DNA from: Haliotis cracherodii
Taxonomy: Eukaryota
Assembly (NCBI RefSeq): GCF_022045235.1
Contig: NW_027266286.1
Location: 12,214,001-12,278,000, forward strand
Length of the DNA: 64,000 bases
Direction of reading: 5' to 3'
Shown: positions 27,117-64,000 of the stretch, piece by piece
Layout: every line of letters begins with the position of its first letter
How positions within the stretch are numbered: position 1 is the stretch's first letter
Position numbers and translations under genes: made by a program
The notes under the pieces: generated by a model
Seen by the model: only the letters and a program-made list of their open reading frames with translations
The model's database searches: none
Told to the model about the DNA's origin: nothing

Positions 27117-27119
27117 AAT

Positions 27120-29980: not shown

Positions 29981-29991
29981 AGTTTGTTGGT

Positions 29992-30510
29992 GTGCTTGAT
30001 GTTTTGTGTCTCACAGAAATACACATGAATGATTACAGTGAAAGAGACCTGCCAGAATATCAAGTCTATCTACTAGACACTACACATGGTATTGCAGAGT
30101 ATGTTTCAACAAATTTCAAGAACAGTGTCCAGCTATGTGATGTAATATCAACTCGCAGTATTGAACACATTTCCTTTCGTGTTGGCAAGTTCTGCATTGC
30201 TTGTGTGTATGTTCCTCCAAAAGTGTCATGGACACGGTTGTCACATTCACTTGCTCATTTATGCAGAAACTCCAGGATCTCTCCAAGCAGCATGAATGTG
30301 AGCATGTCCTAGTTACTAGGGATTTCAACTGTGATCTGAGTGAAAAGCTGTAACTTGAAGATTTCTTTAATGTGCGGTAAATGACTCATTCACTCTCGAA
30401 CTCACTGTCTTGGAGCTACACTGGACGTGTTGTTTACTGATCATGCCAGTGCTGTAGCATTGCAGACTCCAGTCTACTGCCCAGATCATCAGATGATTGG
30501 TGCTGTACTT
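29992..30510 (+). pseudogene. APE-type endonuclease remnant (Helentron C-terminal EN)
   Basis: DVLCLTE, HGIA.YV and CVYVPP, then after frameshifts RDFNCDL, TLDVLFT and VYCPDH. Confidence 0.65.
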
Positions 30511-32626: not shown

Positions 32627-33866
32627 ATGCAGCTCCCGTCTGTGCTGATCTTGGTGTTGGTGGTATGTAGATCTGCTGCAGAAAATATTGAAGACATGAA
32701 AAGGCTGTACAGCGACCTGTTTCGGAACTACAGCACTAAACACAGACCCGTGAACAACCAGAGTCACCATGTTGACGTTCACAATACATTCAACCTGGTT
32801 GCCATAACTGAAGTTGATCAGGTACGACAGACCCTCCATAGCAACGTCTGGATGAATCTGACATGGATGGACGAGTTCCTTATCTGGACAAGATAAGAAT
32901 TACAACGGCATTAAGTCTATTCATCCTCCCTTGACTGACATTTGGAGACCCAAACTCATGGTTCCAGTGTCTCTGGAGGATCGGGACGTCTTTAAAGACG
33001 ACACATCCGGTATCACAGTTTACAGCGATGGCAAAGTCACTTGGACACCTGGAGCAAACTTTCTTACTGACTGTAAGTTAGACCTGACGTTATTCCCATT
33101 TGATGTTCAGACATGTGAGTTCCAATTTATCCCCATCAGCTATGATTCAAGTGAGGTAAAGATGGTCTCAGCTTTGAAGAGTGCAAACAGCCAATCCTTC
33201 ACAACTAACGGAGAATGGATTCTTCCAAGTTCCAGAGCTTTCACTCGCGAAAGGCGCATCGGAGAAGATTTAAGCTTATCTTTCCTTTACATTCAGATTG
33301 ATCTGGAGAGGCGTCCGGCGTTCTTCGTCCTCAATGTCATGCTACCTGTAGTGGTGCTTTCCTTTCTCAACATATTCGTGTTCGCACTGCCGTGTGACTG
33401 TGGCGAGAAGGTTTCGTATGGCATCACATGCCTTCTCTCTCTATCTGTATTCATGAGCATCGTGAGTGGACTACTTCCAAACTCGTCCGACAATATCCCG
33501 CTGGTCACCCTGTATCTTACATGTCTCTTCGGCATCAGCGTTTTGTCAGTTGTCACCACCATCTTAATCGTCATGATATCTACCAGGAAGATCAACAACA
33601 AGAATACACACTCACCTCTGTTTGTGATACCACGTTGTTGGTCGTTATCACTTCATGGACGTAAACGCAAGGTTATCGACGAGACTCAGCAGGAATCTAA
33701 AAACCATGGTTTGGCAGGCGATGGGAACCCCGGGGGTCGAGTGAAGGAAGGCTGGGGAAGTTCTGACTCTGGTGGATATTTGATATCAGCTGACTGTCTG
33801 TGTATGATTATATTCATGGCGGTTTGGCTGTGTGCGACTGGGGGATTCCTCATCAAACTAACATGA
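32627..33866 (+). pseudogene. nAChR-like Cys-loop channel subunit, copy 1, frameshifted
   Basis: CCTGAG of the other copies is replaced by AGATAAG at 32891-32897, giving a TAA stop and a +1 shift. The rest of the reading frame is intact to 33866. Confidence 0.9.
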
Positions 33867-36800
33867 TAAATGAAAGGTCCTTGTGCTATTCTACCAGTGT
33901 GAATCTTCAACGATCTATACTTCTTACGCTAAATGCTTGTCCCTGTGCTCTAGGGTCCTTTGGAAATTCAGAAATAAAACAATTGAGAACATTAACCACA
34001 GTATGTATGTACATTGGACGTTGAACTCACACAACAACATGTCCTCACAATTGGCACCTTCCTGGGTTGTTATTACGTTAATGAAATATGTATTGTTCAC
34101 TGGAGGAGGATATGCTCACTGTCAGCATCAAAGCGGTAAATTGTTATTCGAACCAATTCGAGCCGATTCGGGTGACTCAGTTGCTATGAAAACCAGATCT
34201 TTTCGGAATATTGAAAGAAGAACTGTCTCGTTAAACCATCTGCACTAACCGTAGTGAATTATCATTGAAGTGTATTCTGGTGGATCATCGCACTGTTTCT
34301 GGATCATAATGCAACAGAGTCATGACGTAATTTGGTTCTGCAATGCATCTTCATACCTTATGTGTAATAACAACTAACATGTCTGTGACATTGCACATTG
34401 GTCATGTTATTAGGATAGCGAACTACATATTGTGTAATGGAAAAAAGAGGATAAAATCACTGTCAGAACTATTTGAAATGTTGTTCTTACTGAAAGTGAA
34501 AATGGATTTTATCATCTCTTATCAAGAGCATGACACTTTACAGTGATTGCCATTTGAGTTTTTTTTAAATGGTGGTAACCATTAGTATTAAATAGGACAC
34601 TTTACCTATTCATGTTTGTCATTTGTTTCTATGTTGTACACTCACAGGTGAGGTTTTCTTGAACAAAAACAAGATGTATGGTTCATTGATAGCCAATGCA
34701 TAATAACCAAGCATTTCAACTTTCAGTTTCAGGCTACCATGAGGGTTAGGAGTAGGGTTAACGTTAGGGTTAGGGACATTAGACATGGCTTTCATTCAGA
34801 TGACACTCTGTCCAACAGCATATCTCCGAAAACTGGATGTTATTTTGATACTGCTGTGAGAAAAAATCTAATATAAAAGGCTTGGGTCCAGGAAATAGAT
34901 ATACTTTCTTTTGTCACCAGGTGGTAATTATGTTAATTAATTACGAAACAAATTTAAAATTAACTCTTAGGTGAATTATTCCATTATCTTATTCTCATTA
35001 GAGAAGGATGTGTCGCTCTCTCATATGTCGATTTATGTAGATTTCCGTCTTCTCCCGAACTCAATAAACACACTGACTCCAAAGCGCAGAGAGATACGAT
35101 GTATTGTGTATTGGTATCTGAAACTAAATACATGTCATGACCCTGCTCACAGAAAAAAACTAACTTTCAAGGCTTAGGACACTGGACAGAAAAGAAATAT
35201 CTACTATTTTATCATCTGGTGTTGTTTGTGTTTATACATCATGGAACAGTGTGGAAATTCAATATTTGCTCGTAAGTGGATCAGTCCATTATCATATTGT
35301 CATTAGAGAAGAAGTATGATAGTTCGATATCAGGAGAGAGACCATTTGTCTTCTCTCAAATTCAATAAATACACTGACACCAAAATAGCGTGAGGTATAA
35401 TGCATCGTGTATTGGTAATCATTTGAGACCATACGATCCTTCCTTGGTGTAAACTCCAATGCATTTGTGTATTCAATCTTATTGTGGTTACAGATATGGA
35501 TTATTGAGTTCATTAGGCCACACAAGTTAAGATAACCCTTGGAGCCCATGTGCAAAATAGAAGGGAAAGCACTTAATGACTACATGTATGTACCAACACC
35601 TCAATGCCTACTATTAGAGGATACACAGTACAAATTGACGACAGGTTATATGCGTTTCACCTTCTATCAACAACGTCCGTGTGTGATTGTCCAATACGGG
35701 AATTAAGGTAAGTTGAATATGATCCAAATTCTTTGAATTTATCAAACGTTGTCAGAAAAGGCTGAAAACCAGACATAACACAACATTACTAAATGTGTAA
35801 TTATACAACATGGAATTACAGTTATCGTGGCTATGGTACCACACACATCAAGGTGTCAGACTTAGAAAGCAATGACTTGTGAGTGCATGTATGCCACATG
35901 ACTATAGACTCATTTAACTAACTAAAGAATCACAGCAGATGTAGAGTCACAAGCAATAAAGAAGGATTCTTTCCGTATATCAAACATGAGGCTGGACCAA
36001 GCTTTGCAACCTTGCGTGAAGGAGACATATGATGTCCATCCCAAATTGAGGAATATACAACCGCACAGTTGAAAAGCTGTGGTTACTGGCACAAAACGTT
36101 GCCATATGGGAATTGTGATGAAGCATTTCTGTTGTCCCTGTGGTTTCCGCTACATCATTGATTGAAATGGCACCTATTTTCAGTACCAGATTGTGGGAGG
36201 GAACAATGTTTTACTTTGTGGCTCAGTGATGGATCGACAAAAGCGGAGACCACCTTTCATGCTGGAATTCCTTCATCAAATACTTAGTTCTGGCATATAA
36301 TGGGACAGCCTCTCCATAAACGGAATGCAACCGTCTCAGCAATATTCTTTAATTGACCCATTAGGGTAGACTATTTGCTGCCTGCTGTAACCTTAGTTTT
36401 GTCAGTTTTAACGCTACGGAGTAGTGTCGAAGTCAATTGTCAGTAAATGGCTCCACTGGGCACGCCAAATTGGGATATCATATTTGTGTACATCCCCTTG
36501 TATGTATTTGTTATCACGACGACATTTTGGCCTGTCTCAATACATAGAGCTTAAAAGTGAATTAAAGCAATTGAATTGATTGAAAGCATTGAATCTGTAA
36601 ACTATAATCACAACGCTCGTGTTGACGCTCACCGTATTAAGAAGTCTCAAGGGCTTTCAAGTATTTCATCTGTCCAGGTTTTATGTTGCTGTGGTTGTAT
36701 GTTCACAGCGCGACTCTAACTGTCCTTCATCTGGAGTCCTGTTCGTCATAATCTCACATTTAATGTGAAACACTGAAAATATTTATTTGGTACTTTATTG

Positions 36801-37758
36801 ATCAGCATGCACATCTCAGATACATGACTGTTATTCCTTTTTATTCAACGTCACATCGAATGGTGATCCTAATATATCAACAAAAGTTCAAATAAAAGAT
36901 ACCGAGAAACTGCGAATGTGGCGTGTTAATTCATCATCTAACCTTTCCAGGTCATGGGAGCACACAAAGTCAAAAGAATTAGATAGACGCCAATTGTATC
37001 GTCAAAGTCACATTGTTATTTCATATTAGTGGTGATTACTGATACTATGAAGTGATGTGTGTTTATTCCGGAGGTGACAAATTTACTGTTATTGTTTTGT
37101 AACGATAGATTATCAGCAGACTACCCCTGTCTGTGACATCACATCCGATGACCTTAGCACCTACTGAAATATTGCTGTCAGATTTCACGATCCTTTATTT
37201 CTTTTTTTCCTTGTCACATTGAACGCAAAATTACAAATGAAACAACCTTCGACAAAGATGATCAACTTTCGCCAATGCATGTATATGAAGGCAATGTATT
37301 CTTGATGTTAAAATAGCAATAAGTTATGCTGAGATCGGGCGAAACGCGCCATGTTTGATTTTCGTACGTCTTCATCACGACACGGGAATTGTACTTTCGT
37401 GTATCGTAAATATTCAATCAAAACACTTGAAATTAGGACTGGTGAATATTTATGAGTCATTATTTTTTTCCTGAACATTTATAACATGACAAGTTGCACT
37501 AATGTCCTTATTTCTGCAACTACCATGATGACCTCGAAAATTGGGCTTTTATTCTGTTTTACTTTTGGATAATTTTATTTACTGAAATGGTTTATAATTT
37601 ACCATCTCGCTGTTATTTACCAATAAAGAAAATCGAATTTATACTCGGTTACAATTACGATATCGCAGATATGATAATTGAAATCAATTTGCACAAACTT
37701 AACGATTTAAAACGGTTATTAACATGAAACGCATACCACCTTGAATAACGTAATTCAG

Positions 37759-38635
37759 GTAAGTTCAAGAAAATGTACAATTGTTATGTTCCTTTTGGCC
37801 TTAACCTTGGTATGAATGAAAACATCAGAATATATTTATATAGCAATATATAGTTTTCTATCAGGCATAAATTTGCAAAATATTACTTTAATTGTCCCTT
37901 GTTTAAAGAAGTACCGACTGTTTGAAACCGTTAACTAACTTTACAGCCAAAACACAGTTGTTAACATTGTATATCGTAGCAAAACATTGTAATATACCAG
38001 GATCGAAGTCCGTTATCTGTACGCTGCCGTGATTCACCTGCAACATTATTTGCATAAAACAACAACACTCACTTTATAATGGACCGATCACATAGCCTCC
38101 AATAAGTACAATATATGGCCGAAATTAGATTTCTTGTACAGTACACCCACTGTTAACGACCAGAATGTGTGATTGATACCCACAATACAGAAACAATCTG
38201 TAATCATTTAGAGCTGACAGCCTGCTTTGTCCAAGATATGCAAAAACAATACCGCTGGAAGAACAATGTTGTCCCGTACAACATGAAGGTTACCTCATGT
38301 AAATGGACGTATGATATATCAATAATCAATTCGGGCAGGTATGCCTCTACTCGACATTACAATTAATATCGGTGTGTACACATTGCCTTTAATTCAATTT
38401 CGTGGGTAAATGCATTGTGTGTGGATAATGAAGTTCCATTAGCGCCGGAATATGTCAACATGGCTGGCTGTGTGACAAATAAAAGCCAATGCTCAATACC
38501 CCTTTGAATCGATGACTGTCCTTGTTATCTGTGGAAATAATCACCAAGACTACACATAAACAACTAGTCAATTGGTCTGTCTCAGACACCCATTAAACTA
38601 TCAATTATGATATGTGGACCTTATTTTGTACAAAG
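37759..38635 (+). other. Predicted 5'-UTR intron of the receptor gene (shown for copy 2; present in every unit)
   Basis: CAG|GTAAGT donor at 37759 (CAG|GTGAGT in copy 1). Pyrimidine tract plus AG (TTATTTTGTACAAAG) 16 nt before the ATG. Confidence 0.45.
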
Positions 38636-38651
38636 CTGGTGACCGAGGAAG

Positions 38652-39893
38652 ATGCAGCTCCCGTCTGTGCTGGTGTTGGTGTTGGTGGTATGTAGATCTG
38701 CTGCAGAAAATATTGAAGACATGAAACGGCTGTACACCGACCTGTTTCGGAACTACAGCACTAAACACAGACCCGTGAACAACCAGAGTCACCATGTTGA
38801 CGTTCACAATACATTCAACCTGGTTGCCATAACTGAAGTTGATCAGGTCCGACAGACCCTCCACAGCAACGTCTGGATGAATCTGACATGGATGGACGAG
38901 TTCCTTATCTGGACACCTGAGAATTACAACGGCATTAAGTCTATTCATCCTCCCTTGACTGACATTTGGAGACCCAAACTCATGGTTCCAGTGTCTCTGG
39001 AGGATCGGGACGTCTTTAAAGACGACACATCCGGTATCACAGTTTACAGCGATGGCACAGTCACTTGGACACCTGGAGCAAACTTTCTTACTGACTGTAA
39101 GTTAGACCTGACGTTATTCCCATTTGATGTTCAGACATGTGAGTTCCGATTTATCCCCATCAGCTATTATTCAAGTGAGGTAAAGATGGTCTCAGCTTTG
39201 AAGAGTGCAAACAGCCAATCCTTCACAACTAACGGAGAATGGATTCTTCCAAGTTCCAGAGCTTTCACTCGCGAAAGGCGCATCGGAGAAGATTTAAGCT
39301 TATCTTTCCTTTACATTCAGATTGATCTGGAGAGGCGTCCGGCGTTCTTCGTCCTCAATGTCATTCTACCTGTAGTGGTGCTTTCCTTTCTCAACATATT
39401 CGTGTTCGCACTGCCGTGTGACTGTGGCGAGAAGGTTTCGTATGGCATCACATGCCTTCTCTCTCTATCTGTATTCATGAGCATCGTGAGTGGACTACTT
39501 CCAAACTCGTCCGACAATATCCCGCTGGTCACCCTGTATCTTACATGTCTCTTCGGCATCAGCGTTCTGTCAGTTGTCACCACCATCTTAATCGTCATGA
39601 TATCTACCAGGAAGATCAATAACAAGAATACACACTCACCACTGTTTGTGATACCACGCTGTTGGTCGTTGTTATCACTTCATGGACGTAAAGGCAAGGT
39701 TATGGACGAGACTCAGCAGGAATCTAAAAACCATGGTTTGGCAGGCGATGGGAACCTCAGGGGTCGAGTGAAGGAAGGCTGGGGAAGTTCTGACTCTGGT
39801 GGATATTTGATATCAGCTGACTGTCTGTGTATGGTTATATTCATGGCTGTTTGGCTGTGTGCGACTGGGGGATTCCTCATCAAACTAACATGA
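38652..39893 (+). CDS. Divergent nAChR-like Cys-loop ligand-gated cation channel subunit, copy 2 (413 aa, intronless CDS)
   Basis: Signal peptide, RP...W.D..L.W motif, Cys-loop CKLDLTLFPFDVQTC, NGEW, RRP, four TM helices and GEKVSYGITCLL M2. Confidence 0.95.
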   Translation: MQLPSVLVLVLVVCRSAAENIEDMKRLYTDLFRNYSTKHRPVNNQSHHVDVHNTFNLVAITEVDQVRQTLHSNVWMNLTWMDEFLIWTPENYNGIKSIHPPLTDIWRPKLMVPVSLEDRDVFKDDTSGITVYSDGTVTWTPGANFLTDCKLDLTLFPFDVQTCEFRFIPISYYSSEVKMVSALKSANSQSFTTNGEWILPSSRAFTRERRIGEDLSLSFLYIQIDLERRPAFFVLNVILPVVVLSFLNIFVFALPCDCGEKVSYGITCLLSLSVFMSIVSGLLPNSSDNIPLVTLYLTCLFGISVLSVVTTILIVMISTRKINNKNTHSPLFVIPRCWSLLSLHGRKGKVMDETQQESKNHGLAGDGNLRGRVKEGWGSSDSGGYLISADCLCMVIFMAVWLCATGGFLIKLT

Positions 39894-40114
39894 TAAATGA
39901 AAGGTCCTTGTGCTATTCTACCAGTGTGAATCTTCAACGATCTATACCTCTTATGCTAAATGATTGTCCCTGTGCTCTAGGGTCCGTTGGAAATACAGAA
40001 ATAAAACAACTGAGAACATTCACCACAGTATGTATGTACATTGGACGTTGATCTCACACAACAACATGTCCTCACAATTGGCACCTTCCTGGGTTGTTAT
40101 TAGGATAATAAAAT

Positions 40115-40540
40115 ATGTATTGTTCACTGGAGGATGATATGCTCACTGTCAGCATCAAAGCGGTAAATTGTTTTCGAACCAATTCGAACCGATTCGAGTG
40201 TCTCATTTGCTATGAAAACCAGATTATTACGGAATATTTAAAGAAGAACTGTCTCCGTCAACCATCTGCACTAACCATACTGAATTATCATTGAAGTGTA
40301 TTCTGGTGGATCATCGCAGGATAATAAAAGATGGATTGTTCACTGGAGGATGATATGCCCACTGTCAGCATCAAAGCGGTAAATTGTTATTCGAACCAAT
40401 TCGAACCGATTCGGGTGACTTAGTTGCTATGAAAACCAGATCTTTTCGGAGTATTGAAAGAAGAACTGTCTCCTTCAACCATCTGCACTAACCATACTGA
40501 ATTATCATTGACGTGTATTCTGGTGGATCATCGCACCGTT
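40115..40540 (+). repeat. 216-bp tandem duplication unique to the spacer after copy 2
   Basis: TGTTCACTGGAGGATGATATGC at 40121 and again at 40337. Largely explains the 6216-bp spacing. Confidence 0.85.
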
Positions 40541-43500
40541 CATAATGCAACAGAGTCATGACGTAATTTGGTTCTGCAATGCATCGTCATACCTTATGTG
40601 TAGTGACAACTCACATGTCCGTGACATTACACATTGATTATGTTATTAGGATAGCGAACTACATATTGTGTAATGGAAAAAGGAGGATAAAATCACTGTC
40701 AGTACTATTTGAAATGTTGTTCTTACTGAAAGTGAAAATGGATTGTATCATCTCTTATCAAGAGTATGACACTTTACAGTGATTGCCATTTGAATTTTTT
40801 AAAAATGGTGGTAACCATTAGTATTAAATTGGACACTTTACGTATTCATGTTTATCATTTGTTTCTATGTTGTACACTCACAGGTGAGGTTTTCTTGAAC
40901 AAAAATAAGATGTATGGTTCATTGATAGCCGATGCATAATAACGAAGCATTTCAACTTTCAGTTTCAGGCTACCATTGGGGTTAGGGTTAGGGACATTAG
41001 ACATGGCTTTCATTCAGATGACACTCTGTCCAACAGCATATCTCCGAAAACTGGATGTTATTTTGATACTGCTGTGAGAAAAAATCTAATATAATAAAAG
41101 GCTTGGGACCAGGAAATAGATATACTTTCTTTTGTCACCAGGTGGTAATTATGTTAATTAATTACGAAACAAATTTAAAATTAACTCTTAGGGGAATTAT
41201 TCCATTATCTTATTCTCATTACAGAAGGATGTGTCACTCTCTCATATGTCGCTTTATGTAGATTTCCGTCTTCTCCCGAACTCAATAAACACATTGACAC
41301 ATAAGCGCAGAGAGATACGATGTATTGTGTATTGGTATCTGAAACTAAATACATGTCATGGCCCTGCTCACAGAAAAAACTATCTTTCAAGGCTTGGGAC
41401 ACTGGACAGAAAAGTAATATCTACTAATTTATCATCTGGTGTTGTTTGTGTTTATACATCATGGAACAGTGTGGAAATTCAATAATTGCTCGTAAGTGGA
41501 TCAGTTCATTATCATATTGTCATGAGAGAAGAAGTATGATAGTTCGATATCTGGAGATAGACCGTTTGTCTTCTCTCAAATTCAATAAATACATTGACAC
41601 CAAAATAGAGTAAGGTATAGTGCATCGTGTATTGGTAATCATTTGAGACCATAAGATCCTTCCTTGGTGTAAACTCCAATGCATTTGTGTATACCGGGTT
41701 GTATTCAATCTTATTGTGGTTACTGATATGGATTATTGAGTTCATTAGGCCAGTTACACAAGATAAGATAACCCTTGGAGCCCATGTCTGACTACATGTA
41801 TGTACCAACACCTCAATGCCTACTATTAGAGGATACACAGTACAAATTGATGACAGGTTATATGCGTTTCACCTTCTATCGACAAAGTCCGTGTGTGATT
41901 GTTCAAATACGGGAATTTAGATAAGTTGAATATGATCCAAATTCTTTGAATTTATCAAACGTTGTCAGAAAAGGCTGAAAACCAGACATTACACAACAGT
42001 ACTAAATATGTAATTATACAACATGGAATTACAGTTATCGTGGCTATGGTACCACACACATCAAGGTGTCAGACTTAGAAAGCAATGACTTGTAAGTGCA
42101 TGTATGCCACATGTCTATAGCCTCATTTAACTAACTAAAGAGTCACTGCAGATGTAGAGTCACAAACAATAAAGAAGGATTCTTTCCGTATATCAAACAT
42201 GAGGCTGGAGCAAGCTTTGCAACCTTGCGTGAAGGAGACATATGATGTCCATCCCAAATTGAGGAATATACAACCGCACAGTTGAAAAGCTGTGGTTACT
42301 GGCACAAAACGTTGCCATATGGGAATTGTGATGAAGCATTGTTTCTATTGTCCATGGGGTTTCCGCTACATCATTGATTGAAATGGCAGCTATTTTCAGT
42401 TCCAGATTGTGGGAGGGAACAATGTTTTACTTTGTGGCTCAGTGATGGATCGACAAAAGCGGAGACCACCTTTCATGCTGGAATTCCTTCATCAAATACT
42501 TAGTTCTGGCATATAATGATACAGCCTCTCCATAAACGGAATGCAACCGTCTCATCAATATTCTTTAATTGACCCATTAGGGTAGACTATTTGCTGCCTG
42601 CTGTAACCTTAGTTTTGTCAGTTTTAACGCTACGGAGTAGTGTCGAAGTCAATTGTCAGTAAATGACTCGACTGGGCACGCCAAATTGGGATATCATATT
42701 TGTGTACATCCCCTTGTATGTATTTGTTATCACGACGACATTTTGGCCTGTCTCAATACATAGAGCTTAAAAGTGAATTAAAGCAATTGAATTGATTGAA
42801 AACATTGAATCTGTAAACTATAATCACAACGCTCGTGTTGACGCTCACCGTATTAGGAAGTCTCAAGGGCTTTCAAGTATTTCATCTGTCCAGGTTTTAT
42901 GTTGCTGTGGTTGTATGTTCACAGCGCTACTCTAACTGTCCTTCATCTGGAGTCCTGTTCGTCATAATCTCACATTTAATGTGAAACACTAAAATATTTA
43001 TTTGGTACTTTATTGATCAGCATGTACATCTCAGATACATGACTGTTATTCCTTTTTATTCAACGTCACATCGAATGGTGATCCTAATATATCAACAAAA
43101 GTTCAAATAAAAGATACCGAGAAACTGCGAATGTGGCGTGTTAATTCATCATCTAACCTTTCCAGGTCATGGGAGCACACAAAGTCAAAAGAATTAGATA
43201 GACGCCAATTGTATCGTCAAAGTCACATTGTTATTTCATATTAGTGGTGATTACTGATACTATGAAGTGATGTGTGTTTATTCCGGAGGTGACAAATTTA
43301 CTGTTATTGTTTTGTAACGATAGATTATCAGCAGACTACCCCTGTCTGTGACATCACATCCGATGACCTTAGCACTTACTGAAATATTGCTGTCAGATTT
43401 CACGATCCTTTATTTCTTTTTTTCCTTGTCACATTGAACGCAAAATTACAAATGAAACAACCTTCGACAAAGATGATCAACTTTCGCCAATGCATGTATA

Positions 43501-44867
43501 TGAAGGCAATGTATTCTTGATGTTAAAATAGCAATAAGTTATGCTGAGATCGGGCGAAACGCGCCATGTTTGATTTTCGTACGTCTTCATCACGACACGG
43601 GAATTGTACTTTCGTGTATCGTAAATATTCAATCAAAACACTTGAAATTAGGACTGGTGAATATTTATGAGTCATTATTTTTTTCCTGAACATTTATAAC
43701 ATGACAAGTTGCACTAATGTCCTTATTTCTGCAACTACCATGATGACCTCGAAAATTGGGCTTTTATTCTGTTTTACTTTTGGATAATTTTATTTACTGA
43801 AATGGTTTATAATTTACCATCTCGCTGTTATTTACCAATAAAGAAAATCGAATTTATACTCGGTTACAATTACGATATCGCAGATATGATAATTGAAATC
43901 AATTTGCACAAACTTAACGATTTAAAACGGTTATTAACATGAAACGCATACCACCTTGAATAACGTAATTCAGGTAAGTTCAAGAAAATGTACAATTGTT
44001 ATGTTCCTTTTGGCCTTAACCTTGGTATGAATGAAAACATCAGAATATATTTAAATAGCAATATATAGTTTTCTATCAGGCATAAATTTGCAAAATATTA
44101 CTTTAATTGTCCCTTGTTTAAAGAAACACCGACTGTTTGAAACCGTTAACTAACTTTACAGCTAAAACACAGTTGTTAACATTGTATATCGTAGCCTAAC
44201 ATTGTAATATACCAGGATCGAAGTCTGTTATCTGTACGCTGCCGTGATTCACCTGCAACAACATTTGCATAAAACAACAACACTCACTTTGTAATGGACC
44301 GATCACATAGCCTCCAATAAGTACAATATATGGCCGAAATTAGATTTCTTGTACAGTTCACCCACTGTTAACGACCAGAATGTGTGATTGATACCCACAG
44401 TACAGAAACAATCTGTAATCATTTAGAGCTGACAGCCTGCTTTGTCCAAGATATGCAAAAACAATACCGCTGGAAGAACAATGTTGTCCCGTACAACATG
44501 GAGGTTACCTCATGTAAATGGACGTATGATATATCAATAATCAATTCGGGCAGGTATACCTCTCTTCGACATTACAATTAATATCGGTGTGTACACATTG
44601 CCTTTAATTCAATTTCGTGGGTAGATGCATTGTGTGTGGATAATGAAGTTCCATTAGCGCCGGAATATGTCAACATGGCTGGCTGTGTGACAAATAAAAG
44701 CCAATGCTCAATACCCCTTTGAATCGATGACTGTCCTTGTTATCTGTGGAAATAATCACCAAGACTACACATAAACAACTAGTCAATTGGTCTGTCTGCA
44801 GACACCCATTAAAGTATCAATTATGATATGTGGACCTTATTTTGTACAAAGCTGGTGACCGAGGAAG

Positions 44868-52112: not shown

Positions 52113-55100
52113 TAAATGAAAGGTCCTTGTGCTATTCTGCCAGTGTGAATCTTCAACGATCTATACCTCTTATGCTAAATGATTGTCCCTGTGCTCTAGG
52201 GTCCTTTGGAAATTCAGAAATAAAACAATTGAGAACATTCACCACAGTATGTATGTACATTGGACGTTGAACTCACACAACAACATGTCCTCACAATTGG
52301 CACCTTCCTGGGTTGTTATTAGGATAATGAAATATGTATTGTTCACTGGAGGAGGATATGCTCACTGTCAGCATCAAAGCGGTAAATTGTTATTCGAACC
52401 AATTCGAGCCGATTCGGGTGACTCAGTTGCTATGAAAACCAGATCTTTTCGGAATATTGAAAGAAGAACTGTCTCCTTCAACCATCTGCACTAACCGTAG
52501 TGAATTATCATTGAAGTGTATTCTGGTGGATCATCGCACTGTTTCTGGATCATAATGCAACAGAGTCATGACGTGATTTGGTTCTGCAATGCATCTTCAT
52601 ACCTTATGTGTAATAACAACTAACATGTTCGTGACATTGCACATTGGTCATGTTATTAGGATAGCGAACTACATATTGTGTAATGGAAAAAAGAGTATAA
52701 AATCACTGTCGGTACTATTTGAAATGTTGTTCTTACTGAAAGTGAAAATGGATTTTATCATCTCTTATCAAGAGCATGACACTTTACAGTGATTGCCATT
52801 TGATTTTTTTTTAAATGGTGGTAACCATTAGTATTAAATAGGACACTTTACCTATTCATGTTTGTCATTTGTTTCTATGTTGTACACTCACAGGTGAGTT
52901 TTTTTTAAACAAAAACAAGATGTATGGTTCATTGATAGCCAATGCATAATAACCAAGCATTTCAACTTTCAGTTTCAGGCTACCATGAGGGTTAGGAGTA
53001 GGGTTAGGGTTAGGGACATTAGACATGGCTTTCATTCAGATGACACTCTGTCCAACAGCATATCTCCGAAAACTGGATGTTATTTTGATACTGCTGTGAA
53101 AAAAAATCTAATATAAAAGGCTTGGGACCAGGAAATAGATATACTTTCTTTTGTCACCAGGTGGTAATTATGTTAATTAATTACGAAACAAATTTAAGAT
53201 TAACTCTTAGGGGAATTATTCCATTATCTTATTCTCATTACAGAAGGATGTGTCACTCTCTCATATGTCGCTTTATGTAGATTTCCGTCTTCTCCCGAAC
53301 TCAATAAACACATTGACACATAAGCGCAGAGAGATACGATGTATTGTGTATTGGTATCTGAAACTAAATACATGTCATGACCCTGCTCACAGAAAAAAAC
53401 TATCTTTCAAGGCTTGGGACACTGGACAGAAAAGTAATATCTACTAATTTATCATCTGGTGTTGTTTGTGTTTATACATCATGGAACAGTGTGGAAATTC
53501 AATATTTGCTCGTAAGTGGATCAGTTCATTATCATATTGTCATGAGAGAAGAAGTATGATAGTTCGATATCTGGAGATAGACCGTTTGTCTTCTCTCAAA
53601 TTCAATAAATACATTGACACCAAAATAGAGTAAGGTATAGTGCATCGTGTATTGGTAATCATTTGAGACCATAAGATCCTTCCTTGGTGTAAACTCCAAT
53701 GCATTTGTGTATACCGGGTTGTATTTAATCTTATTGTGGTTACTGATATGGATTATTGAGTTCATTAGGCCAGTTACACAAGATAAGATAACCCTTGGAG
53801 CCCATGTCTGACTACATGTATGTACCAACACCTCAATGCCTACTATTAGAGGATACACAGTACAAATTGATGACAGGTTATATGCGTTTCACCTTCTATC
53901 GACAAAGTCCGTGTGTGATTGTCAAATACGGGAATTTAGATAAGTTGAATATGATCCAAATTCTTTGAATTTATCAAACGTTGTCAGAAAAGGCTGAAAA
54001 CCAGACATAACACAACAGTACTAAATATGTAATTATACAACATGGAATTACAGTTATCGTGGCTATGGTACCACACACATCAAGGTGTCAGACTTAGAAA
54101 GCAATCACTTGTGAGTGCATGTATGCCACATGACTATAGACTCATTTAACTAACTAAAGAGTCACAGCAGATGTAGAGTCACAAGCAATAAAGAAGGATT
54201 CTTTCCGTATATCAAACATGAGGCTGGAGCAAGCTTTGCAACCTTGCGTGAAGGAGACATATGATGTCCATCCCAAATTGAGGAATATACAACCGCACAC
54301 TTGAAAAGCTGTGGTTACTGGCACAAAACGTTGCCATATGGGAATTGTGATGAAGCATTTCTGTTGTCCCTGTGGTTTCCGCTACATCACTGATTGAAAT
54401 GGCACCTATTTTCAGTTCCAGATTGTGGGAGGGAACAATGTTTTACTTTGTGGCTCAGTGATGGATCGACAAAAGCGGAGACCACCTTTCATGCTGGAAT
54501 TCCTTCATCAAATACTTAGTTCTGGCATATAACGGGACAGCCTCTACATGAACGGAATGCAACCGTCTCATCAATATTCTTTAATTGACCCATTAGGGTA
54601 GACTATTTGATGCCTGCTGTAACCTTAGTTTTGTCAGTTTTAACGCTAGGGAGTAGTGTCGAAGTCAATTGTCAGTAAACGACTCCACTGGGCACGCCAA
54701 ATTGGGATATCATATTTGTGTACATCCCCTTGTATGTATCTGTTATCACGACGACATTTTGGCCTGTCTCAATACGTAGAGCTTTAAAGTGAATTAAAGC
54801 AATTGAATTGATTGAAAGCATTGAATCTGTAAACTATAATCACAACGCTCGTGTTGACGCTCACTGTATTAGGAAGTCTCAAGGGCTTTCAAGTATTTCA
54901 TCTGTCCAGGTTTTATGTTGCTGTGGTTGTATGTTCACAGCGCGACTCTAACTGTCCTTCATCTGGAGTCCTGTTCGTCATAATCTCACATTTGATGTGA
55001 AACACTGAAAATATTTATTTGGTACTTTATTGATCAGCATGTACATCTGAGATACATGAATGTTATTCCTTTTTATTCAACGTAACATCGAATGGTGATC

Positions 55101-56888
55101 CTAATATATCAACAAAAGTTCAAATAAAAGATACCGAGAAACTGCGAATGTGGCGTGTTAATTCATCATCTAACCTTTCCAGGTCATGGGAGCACACAAA
55201 GTCAAACGAATTAGGTAAGACGCCAATTGTATCGTCAAAGTCACATTGTTATTTCATATAAGTGGTGATTACTGATACTATGAAGTGATGTGTGTTTATT
55301 CCGGAGGTGACAAATTTACTGTTATTGTTTTGTAACGATAGATTATCAGCAGACTACCCCTGTCTGTGACATCACATCCGATGACCTTAGCACTTACTGA
55401 AATATTGCTGTCAGATTTCACGATCCTTTATTTCTTTTTTCTCTTGTCACATTGAACGCAAAATCACAAATGAAACAACCTTCGACAAAGAAGATCGTCA
55501 ACTTTCGCCAATGCATGTATATGAAGGCAATGTATTCTTGATGTTAAAATAGCAATAAGTTATGCTGAGATCGGGCGAAACGCGCCATGTTTGATTTTCG
55601 TACGTCTTCATCACGACACGGGAATTGTTCTTTCGTGTATCGTAAATATTCAATCAAAAGACTTGAAATTAGGATTGGTGAATATTTATGAGTCATTATT
55701 TTTTTCCTGAACATTTATAACATGACAAGTTGCACTAATGTCCTTATTTCTGCAACTACCATGATGACCTCGAAAATTAGGCTTTTATTCTGTTTTACTT
55801 TTGGATAATTTTATTTACTGAAATGGTTTATAATTTACCATCTCGCTGTTATTTACCAATACAGAAAATCGAAATTATACTCGGTTACAATTACGATATC
55901 GCAGATATGATAATTGAAATCAATTTGCACAAACTTAACGATTTAAAACGGTTATTAACATGAAACGCATACCACCTTGAAGAACGTAATTCAGGTAAGT
56001 TCAAGAAAATGTACAATTGTTATGTTCGTTTTGGCCTTAACCTTGGTATGAATGAAAACATCAGAATATATTTATATAGCAATATATAGTTTTCTATCAG
56101 GCATAAATTTGCAAAATATTACTTTAATTGTCCCTTGTTTAAAGAAGCACCGACTGTTTGAAACCGTTAACAAACTTTACAGCTAAAACACAGTTGTCAA
56201 CATTGTATATCGTAGCCAAACATTGTAATATACCAGGATCGAAGTCCGTTATCTGTACGCTGCCGTGATTCACCTGCAACATTATTTGCATAAAACAACA
56301 ACACTCACTTTATAACGGACCGATCACATAGCCTCCAATAAGTACAATATATGGCCGAAATTAGATTTCTTGTACAGTACACCCACTGTTAACGACCAGA
56401 ATGTGTGATTGATACCCACAATACAGAAACAATCTGTAATCATTTAGAGCTGACAGCCTGCTTTGTCCAAGATATGCAAAAACAATACCGCTGGAAGAAC
56501 AATGTTGTCCCGTACAACATGAAGGTTACCTCATGTAAATGGACGTATGATATATCAATAATCAATTCGGGCAGGTATGCCTCTACTCGACATTACAATT
56601 AATATCGGTGTGTACACGTTGCCTTTAATTCAATTTCGTGGGTAAATGCATTGTGTGTGGATAATGAAGTTCCATTAGCGCTGGAATATGTCAACATGGC
56701 TGGCTGTGTGACAAATAAAAGCCAATGCTCAATACCCCTTTGAATCGATGACTGTCCTTGTTATCTGTGGAAATAATCACCAAGACTACACATAAACAAC
56801 TAGTCAATTGGTCTGTCTGCAGACACCCATTAAACTATCAATTATGATATGTGGACCTTATTTTGTACAAAGCTGGTGACCGAGGAAG

Positions 56889-58127
56889 ATGCAGCTCCCG
56901 TCTGTGCTGGTGTTGGTGTTGGTGGTATGTAGATCTGCTGCAGAAAATATTGAAGACATGAAAAGGCTGTACAGCGACCTGTTTCGGAACTACAGCACTA
57001 AACACAGACCCGTGAACAACCAGAGTCACCATGTTGACGTTCACAATACATTCAACCTGGTTGCCATAACTGAAGTTGATCAGGTCCGACAGACCCTCCA
57101 CAGCAACGTCTGGATGAATCTGACATGGATGGACGAGTTCCTTATCTGGACACCTGAGAATTACAACGGCATTAAGTCTATTCATCCTCCCTTGACTGAC
57201 ATTTGGAGACCCAAACTCATGGTTCCAGTGTCTCTGGAGGATCGGGACGTCTTTAAAGACGACACATCCGGTATCACAGTTTACAGCGATGGCACAGTCA
57301 CTTGGACACCTGGGGCAAACTTTCTTACTGACTGTAAGTTAGACCTGACGTTATTCCCATTTGATGTTCAGACATGCGAGTTCCGATTTATCCCCATCAG
57401 CTATGATTCAAGTGAGGTAAAGATGGTCTCAGCTTTGAAGAGTGCAAATAGCCAATCCTTCACAACTAACGGAGAATGGATTCTTCCAAGTTCCAGAGCT
57501 TTCACTCGCGAAAGGCGCATCGGAGAAGATTTAAGCTTATCTTTCCTTTACATTCAGATTGATCTGGAGAGGCGTCCGGCGTTCTTCGTCCTCAATGTCA
57601 TTCTACCTGTAGTGGTGCTTTCCTTTCTCAACATATTCGTGTTCGCACTGCCGTGTGACTGTGGCGAGAAGGTTTCGTATGGCATCACATGCCTTCTCTC
57701 TCTATCTGTATTCATGAGCATCGTGAGTGGACTACTTCCAAACTCGTCCGACAATATCCCGCTGGTCACCCTGTATCTTACATGTCTCTTCGGCATCAGC
57801 GTTCTGTCAGTTGTCACCACCATCTTCATCGTCATGATAGATACAAGGAAGATCAACAACAAGAATACACACTCACCACTGTTTGTGATACCACGTTGTT
57901 GGTCGTTATCACTTCATGGACGTAAAAGCAAGGTTATGGACGAGACTCAGCAGGAATCTAAACACCATGGTTTGGCAGGCGATGGGAACCCCAGGGGTCG
58001 AGTGAAGGAAGGCTGGGGAAGTTCTGACTCTGGTGGATATTTGATATCAGCTGACTGTCTGTGTATGGTTATATTCATGGCTGTTTGGCTGTGTGCGACT
58101 GGGGGATTCCTCATCAAACTAACATGA
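56889..58127 (+). CDS. Divergent nAChR-like subunit, copy 5 (412 aa)
   Basis: Same motifs; intact ORF. Confidence 0.95.
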   Translation: MQLPSVLVLVLVVCRSAAENIEDMKRLYSDLFRNYSTKHRPVNNQSHHVDVHNTFNLVAITEVDQVRQTLHSNVWMNLTWMDEFLIWTPENYNGIKSIHPPLTDIWRPKLMVPVSLEDRDVFKDDTSGITVYSDGTVTWTPGANFLTDCKLDLTLFPFDVQTCEFRFIPISYDSSEVKMVSALKSANSQSFTTNGEWILPSSRAFTRERRIGEDLSLSFLYIQIDLERRPAFFVLNVILPVVVLSFLNIFVFALPCDCGEKVSYGITCLLSLSVFMSIVSGLLPNSSDNIPLVTLYLTCLFGISVLSVVTTIFIVMIDTRKINNKNTHSPLFVIPRCWSLSLHGRKSKVMDETQQESKHHGLAGDGNPRGRVKEGWGSSDSGGYLISADCLCMVIFMAVWLCATGGFLIKLT

Positions 58128-61100
58128 TAAATGAAAGGTCCTTGTGCTATTCTACCAGTGTGAATCTTCAACGATCTATACCTCTTATGTTAAATGATTG
58201 TCCCTGTGCTCTAGGGTCCGTTGGAAATACAGAAATAAAACAATTGAGAACATTCACCACAGTATGTATGTACATTGGACGTTGAACTCACAAAACAACA
58301 TGTCCTCACAATTGGCACCTTCCTGGGTTGTTATTCGGATAATGAAATATGTATTGTTCACTGGAGGAGGACATGCTCACTGTCAGCATCAAAGCGGTAA
58401 ATTGTTATTCGAACCAATTCGAGCCGATTCGGGTGACTCAGTTGCTATGAAAACCAGATCTTTTCGGAATATTGAAAGAAGAACTGTCTCCTTCAACCAT
58501 CTGCACTAACCGTAGTGAATTATCATTGAAGTGTATTCTGGTGGATCATCGCACTGTTTCTGGATCATAATGCAACAGAGTCATGACGTGATTTGGTTCT
58601 GCAATGCATCTTCATACCTTATGTGTAATAACAACTAACATGTCCGTGACATTGCACATTGGTCATGTTATTAGGATAGCGAACTACATATTGTGTAATG
58701 GAAAAAAGAGTATAAAATCACTGTCGGTACTATTTGAAATGTTGTTCTTACTGAAAGTGAAAATGGATTTTATCATCTCTTATCAAGAGCATGACACTTT
58801 ACAGTGATTGCCATTTGAATTTTTTTTAAATGGTGGTAACCATTAGTATTAAATAGGACACTTTACCTATTCATGTTTGTCATTTGTTTCTATGTTGTAC
58901 ACTCACAGGTGAGTTTTTCTTAAACAAAAACAAGATGTATGGTTCATTGATAGCCAATGCATAATAACCAAGCATTTCAACTTTCAGTTTCAGGCTACCA
59001 TGAGGGTTAGGAGTAGGGTTAGGGTTAGGGACATTAGACATGGCTTTCATTCAGATGACACTCTGTCCAACAGCATATCTCCGAAAACTGGATGTTATTT
59101 TGATACTGCTGTGAAAAAAAATCTAATATAAAAGGCTTGGGACCAGGAAATAGATATACTTTCTTTTGTCACCAGGTGGTAATTATGTTAATTAATTACG
59201 AAACAAATTTAAGATTAACTCTTAGGGGAATTATTCCATTATCTTATTCTCATTACAGAAGGATGTGTCACTCTCTCATATGTCGCTTTATGTAGATTTC
59301 CGTCTTCTCCCGAACTCAATAAACACATTGACACATAAGCGCAGAGAGATACGATGTATTGTGTATTGGTATCTGAAACTAAATACATGTCATGACCCTG
59401 CTCACAGAAAAAAACTATCTTTCAAGGCTTGGGACACTGGACAGAAAAGTAATATCTACTAATTTATCATCTGGTGTTGTTTGTGTTTATACATCATGGA
59501 ACAGTGTGGAAATTCAATATTTGCTCGTAAGTGGATCAGTTCATTATCATATTGTCATGAGAGAAGAAGTATGATAGTTCGATATCTGGAGATAGACCGT
59601 TTGTCTTCTCTCAAATTCAATAAATACATTGACACCAAAATAGAGTAAGGTATAGTGCATCGTGTATTGGTAATCATTTGAGACCATAAGATCCTTCCTT
59701 GGTGTAAACTCCAATGCATTTGTGTATACCGGGTTGTATTCAATCTTATTGTGGTTACTGATATGGATTATTGAGTTCATTAGGCCAGTTACACAAGATA
59801 AGATAACCCTTGGAGCCCATGTCTGACTACATGTATGTACCAACACCTCAATGCCTACTATTAGAGGATACACAGTACAAATTGATGACAGGTTATATGC
59901 GTTTCACCTTCTATCGACAAAGTCCGTGTGTGATTGTCAAATACGGGAATTTAGATAAGTTGAATATGATCCAAATTCTTTGAATTTATCAAACGTTGTC
60001 AGAAAAGGCTGAAAACCAGACATTACACAACAGTACTAAATATGTAATTATACAACATGGAATTACAGTTATCGTGGCTATGGTACCACACACATCAAGG
60101 TGTCAGACTTAGAAAGCAATGACTTGTGAGTGCATGTATGCCACATGGCTATAGACTCATTTAACTAACTAAAGAGTCACTGCAGATGTAGAGTCACAAA
60201 CAACAAAGAAGGATTCTTTCCGTATATCAAACATGAGGCTGGAGCAAGCTTTGCAACCTTGCGTGAAGGAGACATATGATGTCCATCCCAAATTGAGGAA
60301 TATACAACCGCACAGTTGAAAAGCTGTGGTTACTGGCACAAAACGTTGCCATATGGGAATTGTGATGAAGCATTTCTATTGTCCCTGTGTACATCATTGA
60401 TTGAAATGGACCTATTTTCAGTTCCAGATTGTGGGAGGGAACAATGTTTTACTTTGTGGCTCAGTGATGGATCGACAAAAGCGGAGACCACCTTTCATGC
60501 TGGAATTCCTTCATCAAATACTTAGTTCTGGCATATAATTGGACAGCCTCGCCATGAAATGAATGCAACCGTCTCATCAATATTCTTTAATTGACCCATT
60601 AGGGTAGACTATTTGCTGCCCACTGTAACCTTAGTTTTGTCAGTTTTAACGACAAGGAGTAGTATCGAAGTCAATTGTCAGTAAATGACTCCACTGGGCA
60701 CGCCAAATTGTGATATCATATTTGTGTACATTCCCATTGTATGTATTTGTTATAACGACGACATTTTGGCCTGTCTCAATACGTAGAGCTTAAAAGTGAA
60801 TTTAAGCAATTGAATTGATTGAAAGCATTGAATCTGTAAACTATAATCACAACGCTCGTGTTGACGCTCACTGTATTAGGAAGTCTCAAGGGCTTTCAAG
60901 TATTTTATCTGTCCAGGTTTTATGTTGCTGTGGTTGTATGTTCACAGCGCGACTCTAACTGTCCTTCATCTGGAGTCCTGTTCGTCATAATCTCACATTT
61001 AATGTGAAACACTGAAAATATTTATTTGGTACTTTATTGATCAGCATGTACATCTCAGATACATGACTGTTGTTCCTTTTTATTCAACGCAACATCGAAT

Positions 61101-62894
61101 GCTGATCCTAATATATCAACAAAAGTTCAAATAAAAGATACCGAGAAACTGCGAATGTGGCGTGTTAATTCATCATCTACCGTTTCCGGGTCATGGGAGC
61201 AAACAAAGTCAAACGAATTAAATAGACGCCAATCATATCGTCAAAGATACATTGTTATTTCCTATTAGTGGTGATTACTGATACTATGAAGTGATGTGTG
61301 TTTATTCCGGAGGTGATAAATTTACTGTTATTGTTTTGTAACGATAGATTATCAGCAGACTACCCCTGTCTGTGACATCACATCCGATGACCTTAGCACT
61401 TACTGAAATATTGCTGTCAGATTTCACGATCCTTTATTTCTTTTTTCTCTTGTCACATTGAAGGCAAAATTACAAATGAAACAACCCTCGACAAGGAAGA
61501 TCGTCAACTTTCGCCAATGCATGTATATGAAGGCAATGTATTCTTGATGTTAAAATAGCAATAAGTTATGCTGAGATCGGGCGAAACGCGCCATGTTTGA
61601 TTTTCGTACGTCTTCATCACGACACGGGAATTGTACTTTCGTATATCGTAAATATTCAATCAAAAGACTTGAAATTAGGATTGGTGAATATTTATGAGTC
61701 ATCTATGTTTTCCTGAACATTTATAACATGACAAGTTGCACTAATGTCCTTATTTCTGCAACTACCATGATGACCTCGAAAATTAGGTTTTTATTCTGTT
61801 TTACTTTTGGATAATTTTATTTACTGAAATGGTTTATAATTTACCATCTCGCTGTTATTTACCAATACAGAAAATCGAATTTATACTCGGTTACAATTAC
61901 GATATCGCAGATATGATAATTGAAATCAATTTGCACAAACTTAACGATTTAAAACGGTTATTAACATGAAACGCATACCACCTTGAATAACGTAATTCAG
62001 GTAAGTTCAAGAAAATGTACAATTGTTATGTTCGTTTTGGCCTTAACCTTGGTATGAATGAAAACATCAGAATATATTTATATAGCAATATATAGTTTTC
62101 TATCAGGCATAAATGTGCAAAATATTACTTTAATTGTCCCTTGTTTAAAGAAGCACCGACTGTTTGAAACCGTTAACTAACTTTACAGCTAAAACACAGT
62201 TGTTAACATTGTATATCGTAGCCTAACATTGTAATATACCAGGATCGAAGTCCGTTATCTGTACGCTGCTGTGATTCACCTGCAACAACATTTGCATAAA
62301 ACAACAACACTCACTTTATAATGGACCGATCACATAGCTTCCAATAAGTACAATATATGGCCGAAATTAGATTTCTTGTACAGTATACCCACTGTTAACG
62401 ACCAGAATGTGTGATTGATACCCAAAATACAGAAACAATCTGTAATCATTTAGAGCTGACAGCCTGCTTTGTCCAAGATATGCAAAAACAATACCGCTGG
62501 AAGAACAATGTTGTCCCATACAACATGAAGGTTACCTCATGTAAATGGACGTATGATATATCAATAATCAATTCGGGCAGGCATGCCTCTACTCGACATT
62601 ACAATTAATATCGGTGTGTACACATTGCCTTTAATTCAATTTCGTGGGTAAATGCATTGTGTGTGGATAATGAAGTTCCATTAGCGCCGGAATATGTCAA
62701 CATGGCTGGCTGTGTGACAAATAAAAGCCAATGCTCAATACCCCTTTGAATCGATGACTGTCCTTGTTATCTGTGGAAATAATCACCAAGACTACACATA
62801 AACAACTAGTCAATTGGTCTGTCTGCAGACACCCATTAAACTATCAATTATGATATGTGGACCTTATTTTGTACAAAGCTGGTGACCGAGGAAG

Positions 62895-64000
62895 ATGCAG
62901 CTCCCGTCTGTGCTGGTGTTGGTGTTGGTGGTATGTAGATCTGCTGCAGAAAATATTGAAGACATGAAAAGGCTGTACAGCGACCTGTTTCGGAACTACA
63001 GCACTAAACACAGACCCGTGAACAACCAGAGTCACCATGTTGACGTTCACAATACATTCAACCTGGTTGCCATAACTGAAGTTGATCAGGTCCGACAGAC
63101 CCTCCACAGCAACGTCTGGATGAATCTGACATGGATGGACGAGTTCCTTATCTGGACACCTGAGAATTACAACGGCATTAAGTCTATTCATCCTCCCTTG
63201 ACTGACATTTGGAGACCCAAACTCATGGTTCCAGTGTCTCTGGAGGATCGGGACGTCTTTAAAGACGACACATCCGGTATCACAGTTTACAGCGATGGCA
63301 CAGTCACTTGGACACCTGGGGCAAACTTTCTTACTGACTGTAAGTTAGACTTGACGTTATTCCCATTTGATGTTCAGACATGCGAGTTCCGATTTATCCC
63401 CATCAGCTATTATTCAAGTGAGGTAAAGATGGTCTCAGCTTTGAAGAGTGCAAACAGCCAATCCTTCACAACTAACGGAGAATGGATTCTTCCAAGTTCC
63501 AGAGCTTTCACACGCGAAAGGCACATCGGAGAAGATTTAAGCTCATCTTTCCTTTACATTCAGATTGATCTGGAGAGGCGTCCGGCGTTCTTCGTCCTCA
63601 ATGTCATCCTACCTGTAGTGGTGCTTTCCTTTCTCAACATATTCGTGTTCGCACTGCCGTGTGACTGTGGCGAGAAGGTTTCGTATGGCATCACATGCCT
63701 TCTCTCTCTAACTGTATTCATGAGCATCGTGAGTGGACTACTTCCAAACTCGTCCGACAATATCCCGCTGGTCACCCTGTATCTTACATGTCTGTTCGGC
63801 ATCAGCGTTCTGTCAGTTGTCACCACCATTTTCATCGTCATGATATCTACCAGGAAGATCAACAACAAGAATACACACTCACCACTGTTTGTGATACCAC
63901 GTTGTTGGTCGTTATCACTTCATGGACGTAAACGCAAGGTTATGGACGAGATTCAGCAGGAATCTAAAAACCATGGTTTGGCAGGCGATGGGATCCCCGG
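62895..64000 (+). CDS. Divergent nAChR-like subunit, copy 6 (cut by the window edge)
   Basis: ATGCAGCTCCCG at 62895; collinear with copy 4 and open to the end of the window. Absent from the ORF track because no stop codon falls inside the window. Confidence 0.9.
   Translation, partial: MQLPSVLVLVLVVCRSAAENIEDMKRLYSDLFRNYSTKHRPVNNQSHHVDVHNTFNLVAITEVDQVRQTLHSNVWMNLTWMDEFLIWTPENYNGIKSIHPPLTDIWRPKLMVPVSLEDRDVFKDDTSGITVYSDGTVTWTPGANFLTDCKLDLTLFPFDVQTCEFRFIPISYYSSEVKMVSALKSANSQSFTTNGEWILPSSRAFTRERHIGEDLSSSFLYIQIDLERRPAFFVLNVILPVVVLSFLNIFVFALPCDCGEKVSYGITCLLSLTVFMSIVSGLLPNSSDNIPLVTLYLTCLFGISVLSVVTTIFIVMISTRKINNKNTHSPLFVIPRCWSLSLHGRKRKVMDEIQQESKNHGLAGDGIP

Follow-up and report, generated by a model that had tools for sequence, protein, structure and literature searches.

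The closest described relatives of the locus considered here, a tandem array of genes for subunits resembling nicotinic acetylcholine receptors (nAChRs) in a 64,000-bp window of the 1.18-Gb genome of the black abalone, Haliotis cracherodii (G000:C23:12214001-12278000; positions below are counted within the window), are: (i) the massive nAChR expansions of molluscs, which are intronless and tandem, with more than 100 copies per genome, (ii) the cephalopod chemotactile receptors (CRs; octopus CRT1 and squid CRB1, PDB 9e6b and 8eiz), (iii) Alpo4 of Alvinella pompejana (PDB 8bx5), an orphan lophotrochozoan nAChR-like receptor that is gated by neither acetylcholine (ACh) nor serotonin (PMC10338036), and (iv) the vertebrate alpha7 nAChR. 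The account of the molluscan expansions by Jiao et al. 2019 (PMC6896357) centres on bivalves, with gastropod expansion "to a lesser extent"; the bivalve genes are reported to be expressed early in development and during immune and stress responses, and absent or low expression is more frequent among the intron-poor bivalve nAChR genes. The MolluscaGenes preprint (PMC13174522), in the text of which there are 0 occurrences of Haliotis data, distinguishes 15 molluscan nAChR clades, the divergent ones being substituted at ligand-binding residues. In that work the CRs form a mostly cephalopod clade beside a broader 'CR-like' clade of gastropods, bivalves and chitons, and it is explicitly suggested that such receptors may serve gastropod chemosensory organs.

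The abalone array belongs to this mollusc-wide expansion, and its pattern is already published (PMC6896357, PMC13174522). Single-exon coding sequences (CDS), tandem layout and lineage-specific growth are common to the array and the described expansions, as is the loss of the vicinal cysteines and other agonist-contact residues. No description of this Haliotis subfamily, or of its array of six copies homogenised by conversion, was found in the literature searched, and the same literature yielded nothing specific on abalone nAChR-like genes in settlement, tentacle or rhinophore chemosensation. The array is likely to be a recently amplified and still-homogenised set of non-cholinergic nAChR-like subunits, presumed to form pentameric cation channels gated by a ligand other than ACh, and the genes are real and, judged from their sequence, probably functional. 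New copies would arise, and existing ones stay alike, through unequal crossing-over and gene conversion. Their physiological role may be sensory, developmental or linked to immunity or stress. The subunits would assemble as pentamers, alone or with array paralogs, and would act as cation channels, gated not by acetylcholine but by a ligand that would sit in a remodelled, charge-rich pocket of loops B, C and F, the fastest-evolving extracellular segments. The proposal of the first-pass annotation, that of intron-free, tandem, recently amplified subunits with a cation-type pore and without the ACh cage of the principal face, is supported by the open reading frames (ORFs) and the alignments.

A single CDS searched against the window by blastn finds six copies at 97.6-100% identity, four of which appear in the ORF listing of the window as intact plus-strand ORFs of 412-413 aa. 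When window and genome are combined, six copies stand head to tail, five intact and one frameshifted, so that the earlier count of "at least six" near-identical, single-exon subunits at a ~6-kb period becomes exactly six; a seventh is not found in the genome, where the unit homology ends 1405 bp beyond the window end. The unit period is 6006-6216 bp, identity between units is 94-99.7% (self-blastn and unit comparison), and the first unit is incomplete, cut off ~0.5-0.9 kb upstream of copy 1. Each ORF spans the signal peptide to the end of the fourth membrane helix (M4), and the CDS is therefore a single exon; this statement covers the CDS, and an intron may still lie in the 5' untranslated region (UTR). 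The 4.8 kb of non-coding DNA in a unit has no ORF of more than 115 aa besides the channel gene. The 1-bp insertion in copy 1 shifts the frame after about codon 88, and the copy is thus a pseudogene. The window contains 0 runs of N, and the 216/217-bp duplication private to unit 2 indicates that each unit is a separate copy and no echo of assembly. An ATTAAA motif lies at 46827, downstream of the probable 3'UTR of copy 3. The features of the array are collected in the table.

Table. Features of the nAChR-like array, in window coordinates unless a genome position is given.
Feature	Position	Strand	Evidence
Tandem array of ~6.0-kb units	31708..64000, plus 1405 bp past window end	+	self-blastn; array end from genomic unit homology
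Copy 1, pseudogene; 1-bp insertion near 32890 (alignment column 264)	32627..33866	+	blastn, copy alignment
Copy 2, intact, 413 aa; one extra in-frame codon in M3-M4 loop; loop C RERRIGEDLSL	38652..39893	+	ORF list, copy alignment
216/217-bp tandem duplication, unit 2 only	40102..40535	+	self- and unit comparison
Copy 3, intact, 412 aa; loop C RERHIGEDLSS	44868..46106	+	ORF list, Pfam, alpha7 alignment, AlphaFold2
Copy 3, probable 3'UTR	46107..46775	+	probable-RNA contigs reach here, no further
Copy 4, intact, 412 aa	50874..52112	+	ORF list
Copy 5, intact, 412 aa; second half of CDS ~3% different (conversion tract), flanks 99.9% identical to unit 3	56889..58127	+	unit comparison
Copy 6, cut by window end; intact and complete in genome at G000:C23:12276895-12278130	62895..64000	+	blastn, genome search

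The array protein, represented in all searches by copy 3, has the features of a Cys-loop pentameric ligand-gated ion channel (pLGIC), namely a beta-sandwich ligand-binding domain, a Cys-loop with 13-residue spacing and four membrane helices. Pfam identifies Neur_chan_LBD (PF02931, E = 1e-44) and Neur_chan_memb (PF02932, E = 8.5e-22), the best PDB sequence match by HMMER is the alpha7 nAChR (E = 6e-53), and a protein atlas comparison gives the same family assignment. The AlphaFold2 (AF2) model, built on a 75-sequence alignment, has a mean predicted local distance difference test score (pLDDT) of 86.7 and the full pLGIC topology, in the order signal/N-terminal helix, beta-sandwich, M1-M3, disordered loop and M4, and is aligned to alpha7 by VIA-align with Z = 30.5. 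The M3-M4 loop, noted earlier as short at ~70 aa, has ~63 residues and is predicted to be disordered.

Alignment to human alpha7 by HMMER and a 143-sequence alignment agree on the state of the ACh site. The loop A Tyr is replaced by Pro and the loop B Trp by Ile, and loop C has lost Tyr188, Cys190-Cys191 and Tyr195, reading RERH/RIGEDLSS/L with Ile and Ser/Leu at the aligned positions; the vicinal Cys-Cys and aromatic cage of a canonical nAChR alpha subunit are thus absent. The loop D Trp and both cysteines of the Cys-loop are retained in the array copies. The pore likewise keeps the cation-type motif GEK with E-1', T6' and L9', E-1' being present in all copies, and M2 aligns as GEKVSYGITCLLSL in the array protein to GEKISLGITVLLSL in alpha7. 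On both sides of this balance, losses in loops A, B and C and retention of the loop D Trp and GEK/E-1'/T6'/L9', every residue named by the first-pass annotation is confirmed by the two alignments. Cation selectivity is predicted from Glu at -1', Leu at 9' and the absence of the Pro-Ala motif of anion channels. Two further features of the pore region were observed. Position 20' is Gly in the array proteins and Glu in alpha7, a difference absent from the earlier annotation, and an unusual Cys-Asp/Glu-Cys triplet occupies residues 256-258 of all copies, just before GEK at the cytoplasmic mouth of M2. The triplet and the Gly at 20' could alter conductance or permeability to divalent ions.

Among the described receptors, vertebrate alpha7 is the best match by sequence and structure and shares the M2 motif GEK..T6'..L9' with the array. 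It differs in that the array proteins lack all principal-face agonist residues, have Gly and not Glu at 20', possess a shorter intracellular loop (~63) and belong to a separate clade. Alpo4 resembles the array proteins as a lophotrochozoan, nAChR-like receptor without the loop C Cys-Cys (Z = 26.1), yet it keeps an aromatic cage (loop A Phe, loop B Trp and loop C tyrosines; PMC10338036) that the abalone proteins have lost. The cephalopod CRs share more of the organisation: they are nAChR-derived, intron-free and tandem, their ACh cage is lost, and they are cation channels with a short intracellular loop and the same fold (Z = 23.2 for CRT1 and 22.9 for CRB1). A sensory role is established for the CRs and is hypothetical for the abalone array.

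Special kinship to the cephalopod CRs is not supported. Kinship to the CRs was judged solely by structural-alignment identity and by the ranking of PDB matches to a profile. Structure-based identity to the array protein is 26% for CRT1, 25% for CRB1, 26% for Alpo4 and 29% for alpha7, and the CRs are absent from the best 60 PDB matches of a 60-sequence profile of the divergent clade, in which alpha7 scores 339 bits and the last match listed 262. Foldseek against the PDB is uninformative on the CRs, the matches displayed being vertebrate nAChRs only. Cephalopods number 0 among 30 relatives checked by name, and none appears in the protein searches with the single protein or the 60-sequence profile. 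The likeness to the CRs is most plausibly a case of parallel evolution inside a single superfamily.

A HMMER scan of 1.84 billion representatives recovers one 50%-identity cluster for the Haliotis subfamily, followed by single-domain relatives at 37-48%. The closest relatives outside Haliotis are all gastropods (37-45% identity): the 32-row gastropod clade around the subfamily includes Babylonia, Pomacea, Biomphalaria, Candidula, Elysia, Aplysia and Patella, and further out are Littorina, Physella, one bivalve and one nemertean. Trees were made with FastTree (143 rows) and IQ-TREE (64 rows), and the approximately unbiased (AU) test was run on 33 rows. Both trees unite alpha7, alpha4, beta, alpha9/10-like and abalone alpha-like 1 in one canonical group, place all non-canonical rows in a divergent clade (support 94-97) and recover the Haliotis subfamily as monophyletic (support 100) within a gastropod clade (97-99). 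A union of the subfamily with canonical nAChRs is rejected by the AU test (log-likelihood difference 59, p = 0.0005); the first-pass annotation had named grouping with the canonical beta/non-alpha nAChRs beforehand as the outcome that would overturn it, and the subfamily stands apart from them. Judged from these sequences, the subfamily is seen only in Haliotis and falls, with its gastropod clade, within the known molluscan expansion of largely intron-free nAChR genes.

In the 143-sequence alignment the vicinal Cys are absent from 126 of 126 divergent rows, the loop A Tyr from all but three, and the loop B Trp from a 72-row gastropod subclade. Since the loss of the ACh site is common to the divergent clade and to the paralogs sampled in this genome, it is no peculiarity of this array. 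Five members of the subfamily, from H. rubra and H. asinina, have Leu or Met in place of the loop D Trp. Within the black abalone genome, at least 101 long single-ORF nAChR-like matches occur among 367 candidates, nearly all stop-free, and the single-ORF paralogs form many tandem clusters on at least ten contigs. Single ORFs, clusters and species- or genus-specific clades, the marks of the expanded intron-poor molluscan nAChR-like genes, are thus all found here. The subfamily itself has 8 genes in this genome, all within ~100 kb of one chromosome: the six array copies and two paralogs of 72-74% identity, 48 and 68 kb upstream of the array. Other abalone species have 4-11 members.

Elsewhere in the genome, larger tandem arrays of single-ORF nAChR-like genes, of up to ~15 copies, are observed at C56:12.05-12.15 Mb, C23:68.10-68.28 Mb, C3:15.0 and 35.1 Mb, C12:71.84-71.90 Mb and C9:20.85-20.88 Mb (all G000); sampled members of these other arrays likewise lack the ACh-binding residues. 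Some paralogs have also lost the Cys-loop disulfide. In L008 (G000:C23:12177733-12178935), its H. rufescens orthologue P0007, and P0008 the second Cys is Phe, and in L013 and L014 (G000:C8) both Cys-loop cysteines are replaced; the ORFs of these paralogs are otherwise intact.

The copies of the array are young and have exchanged sequence. Synonymous divergence (dS) among them is 0.01-0.05, with pairwise ratios of nonsynonymous to synonymous divergence (dN/dS, omega) of 0.24-0.69, and comparison with the two older paralogs gives a dS of 0.38-0.51 and a dN/dS of 0.29-0.41. The former dS set against the latter indicates that amplification is at least tenfold younger than the split from the neighbouring paralogs, and the dN/dS against those paralogs indicates a lineage under moderate purifying selection. 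The six copies have accumulated at least 27 nonsynonymous and 20 synonymous changes, where 77% nonsynonymous would be expected under neutrality (binomial p = 0.002); purifying selection among the copies is mild. Positive selection was looked for pairwise among the array copies and was not found, omega being below 1 in every pair. Identity between units is 97.7-98.8% in coding and 97.1-99.7% in non-coding sequence.

Differences between units are strongly mosaic, which points to gene conversion or unequal crossing-over. Units 3 and 5 have 31 differing sites in alignment columns 500-1500, a region that spans the latter half of the CDS and the first part of the 3' flank, and only 5 in the remaining 4.7 kb; in other unit pairs the near-identical blocks lie elsewhere. 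Along the array the copies switch between two loop-C haplotypes: copies 1, 2 and 5 have RERRIGEDLSL together with Ser273, and copies 3, 4 and 6 have RERHIGEDLSS together with Thr273. Across the subfamily, loops B, F and C are the most variable extracellular segments (mean entropy 0.65-0.86), as compared with 0.16 for the Cys-loop and 0.23 for M2. Of the phrase "young, still-amplifying" that had been applied to the cluster, recent amplification holds (dS 0.01-0.05), while "still amplifying" is only one reading, as conversion or unequal crossing-over also keeps copies alike.

Transcription was approached through sequencing runs that are probably RNA: the run listing records no run as RNA, so that this status is a guess, and its tissue labels are coded. 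Sixteen probable-RNA runs (assemblies of 48-106 Mb) hold 8-36% of the words of the gene, and ~1-Gb runs hold 43-45%. Contigs from four of the smaller probable-RNA runs, representing four organisms and four studies, were mapped to 42500-48499. They span 44884-46775 at 90-98% identity, that is, the CDS and ~670 nt of 3' flank, and in these four runs no probable-RNA contig covers 44300-44880 or 46900-48499. DNA would be expected to cover both flanks equally, and the asymmetric coverage thus fits orthologue transcripts in related abalones, an indirect sign of probable transcription. A separate observation concerns 42900-44300 and the matching place upstream of the CDS in each unit, where all four runs give short, high-depth, partly matching contigs with loose ends; these may derive from dispersed, transcribed repeats, fragments of which would lie within the array unit.

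Several points weigh against the preferred reading, that of non-cholinergic channel subunits in a young, homogenised array. We infer homomeric assembly and ligand gating from family membership, and the probable-RNA contigs carry a guessed label and come from other species at 90-98% identity. Units are no more alike in coding than in non-coding sequence, so conservation within the array reflects mostly youth or conversion and not selection, and for a channel an omega of 0.3-0.4 is high and would fit relaxed constraint. Taken further, the same evidence could describe a neutrally amplified 6-kb block with little or no function, its ORFs intact merely through youth, which would agree with the similar coding and non-coding identity, with the frameshift already present in one copy, with the dS of merely 0.01-0.05 and with the more frequent lack of, or low, expression of bivalve intron-poor nAChR genes (PMC6896357). 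A block of this kind is nevertheless improbable, as the copies show fewer nonsynonymous changes than neutrality predicts (p = 0.002), omega has been maintained at 0.3-0.4 since the split from paralogs at dS 0.4-0.5, the CDS has changed in length by one frameshift and one in-frame codon only while the non-coding sequence has indels of 24 bp and 216 bp, and in four related organisms probable-RNA contigs span the CDS with its 3'UTR. It is very improbable that the proteins are accessory subunits with a structural or complementary-face part, working only in ACh-gated heteromers with canonical alpha subunits. Conservation of the complementary-face loop D Trp and of the pore in the array copies would suit such a part, but the subfamily falls outside the clade of canonical alpha and beta/non-alpha subunits, abalone alpha-like 1 included (AU p = 0.0005), the loop D Trp is itself Leu or Met in the five H. 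rubra and H. asinina members, and five near-identical intact copies would be unexpected for a stoichiometric accessory subunit. Mis-assembly is a known risk where tandem repeats are nearly identical, and by it one gene could wrongly be made six; the units differ by 0.3-6%, however, and given their private changes (the copy 1 frameshift, the extra codon and 216-bp duplication of unit 2 and the two loop-C haplotypes) this artefact is rejected, the chance left to it being negligible.

More weight falls on the view that these are chemosensory receptors, an abalone counterpart of the CRs expressed in tentacle, epipodium, osphradium, foot or competent larvae and responding to environmental ligands, although it too is unlikely. 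The view draws on the feature set common to the array and the CRs (intron-free, tandem, cage lost, cation pore and short M3-M4 loop), on the variability of pocket loops B, F and C, the highest among paralogs, and on omega, which at 0.3-0.4 falls in the range usual for chemoreceptor families. Against it, loop C is rich in charged residues (RERH/RIGED), whereas the pocket of CRT1 is described as greasy, and the array genes are no nearer to CRT1 and CRB1 than to alpha7. The same features, moreover, are present in more than 100 paralogs of this genome and in the bivalve expansions. The MolluscaGenes preprint (PMC13174522) proposes such a role for divergent gastropod clades, but the expression reported from bivalves is that of early developmental stages and of immune or stress responses (PMC6896357). 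A chemosensory or settlement role, resting on analogy, is thus speculative. In one form of it, considered rather unlikely, the nAChR-like channels of the Haliotis subfamily would have been recruited independently as peripheral chemoreceptors, in parallel to the CRs and not by common inheritance with them, and ongoing adjustment to cues from algae, biofilm or conspecifics would account for the recent amplification and the two loop-C haplotypes.

If environmental chemosensing were true, the change from nicotinic receptor to chemoreceptor would have recurred within the molluscs and would not be peculiar to cephalopods, and abalone research would gain receptor candidates for settlement and feeding cues. 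The array is in any case a clean case of birth and death in intron-free nAChR-like genes, in which one pseudogene and five intact copies stand alongside conversion tracts and two haplotypes of the pocket. Because the copies are near-identical, they form a compact set of natural variants for probing what a nicotinic channel without an ACh site binds.

The remainder of the window contains other repeats. ORFs at 4166-5599 on the minus strand have no Pfam match. A Ty3/gypsy-type retrotransposon with long terminal repeats (LTRs) occupies 19349-27681, 4 kb upstream of the array. Its LTRs (19349-19907 and 27120-27681, ~560 bp) are 100% identical, and its uninterrupted minus-strand ORF of 1739 aa (21671-26890) has protease, reverse transcriptase, RNase H and integrase domains; the element looks like a very recent insertion. 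Two minisatellites are noted, one inside the element (20976-21513; 44-bp unit, ~12 repeats) and one between it and the array (29359-30084; 52-bp unit, ~10 repeats). A 205-aa plus-strand ORF at 2214-2831, which matches DUF5641 (E = 1e-29) and has a trace of an integrase core, is probably the remnant of another retroelement.

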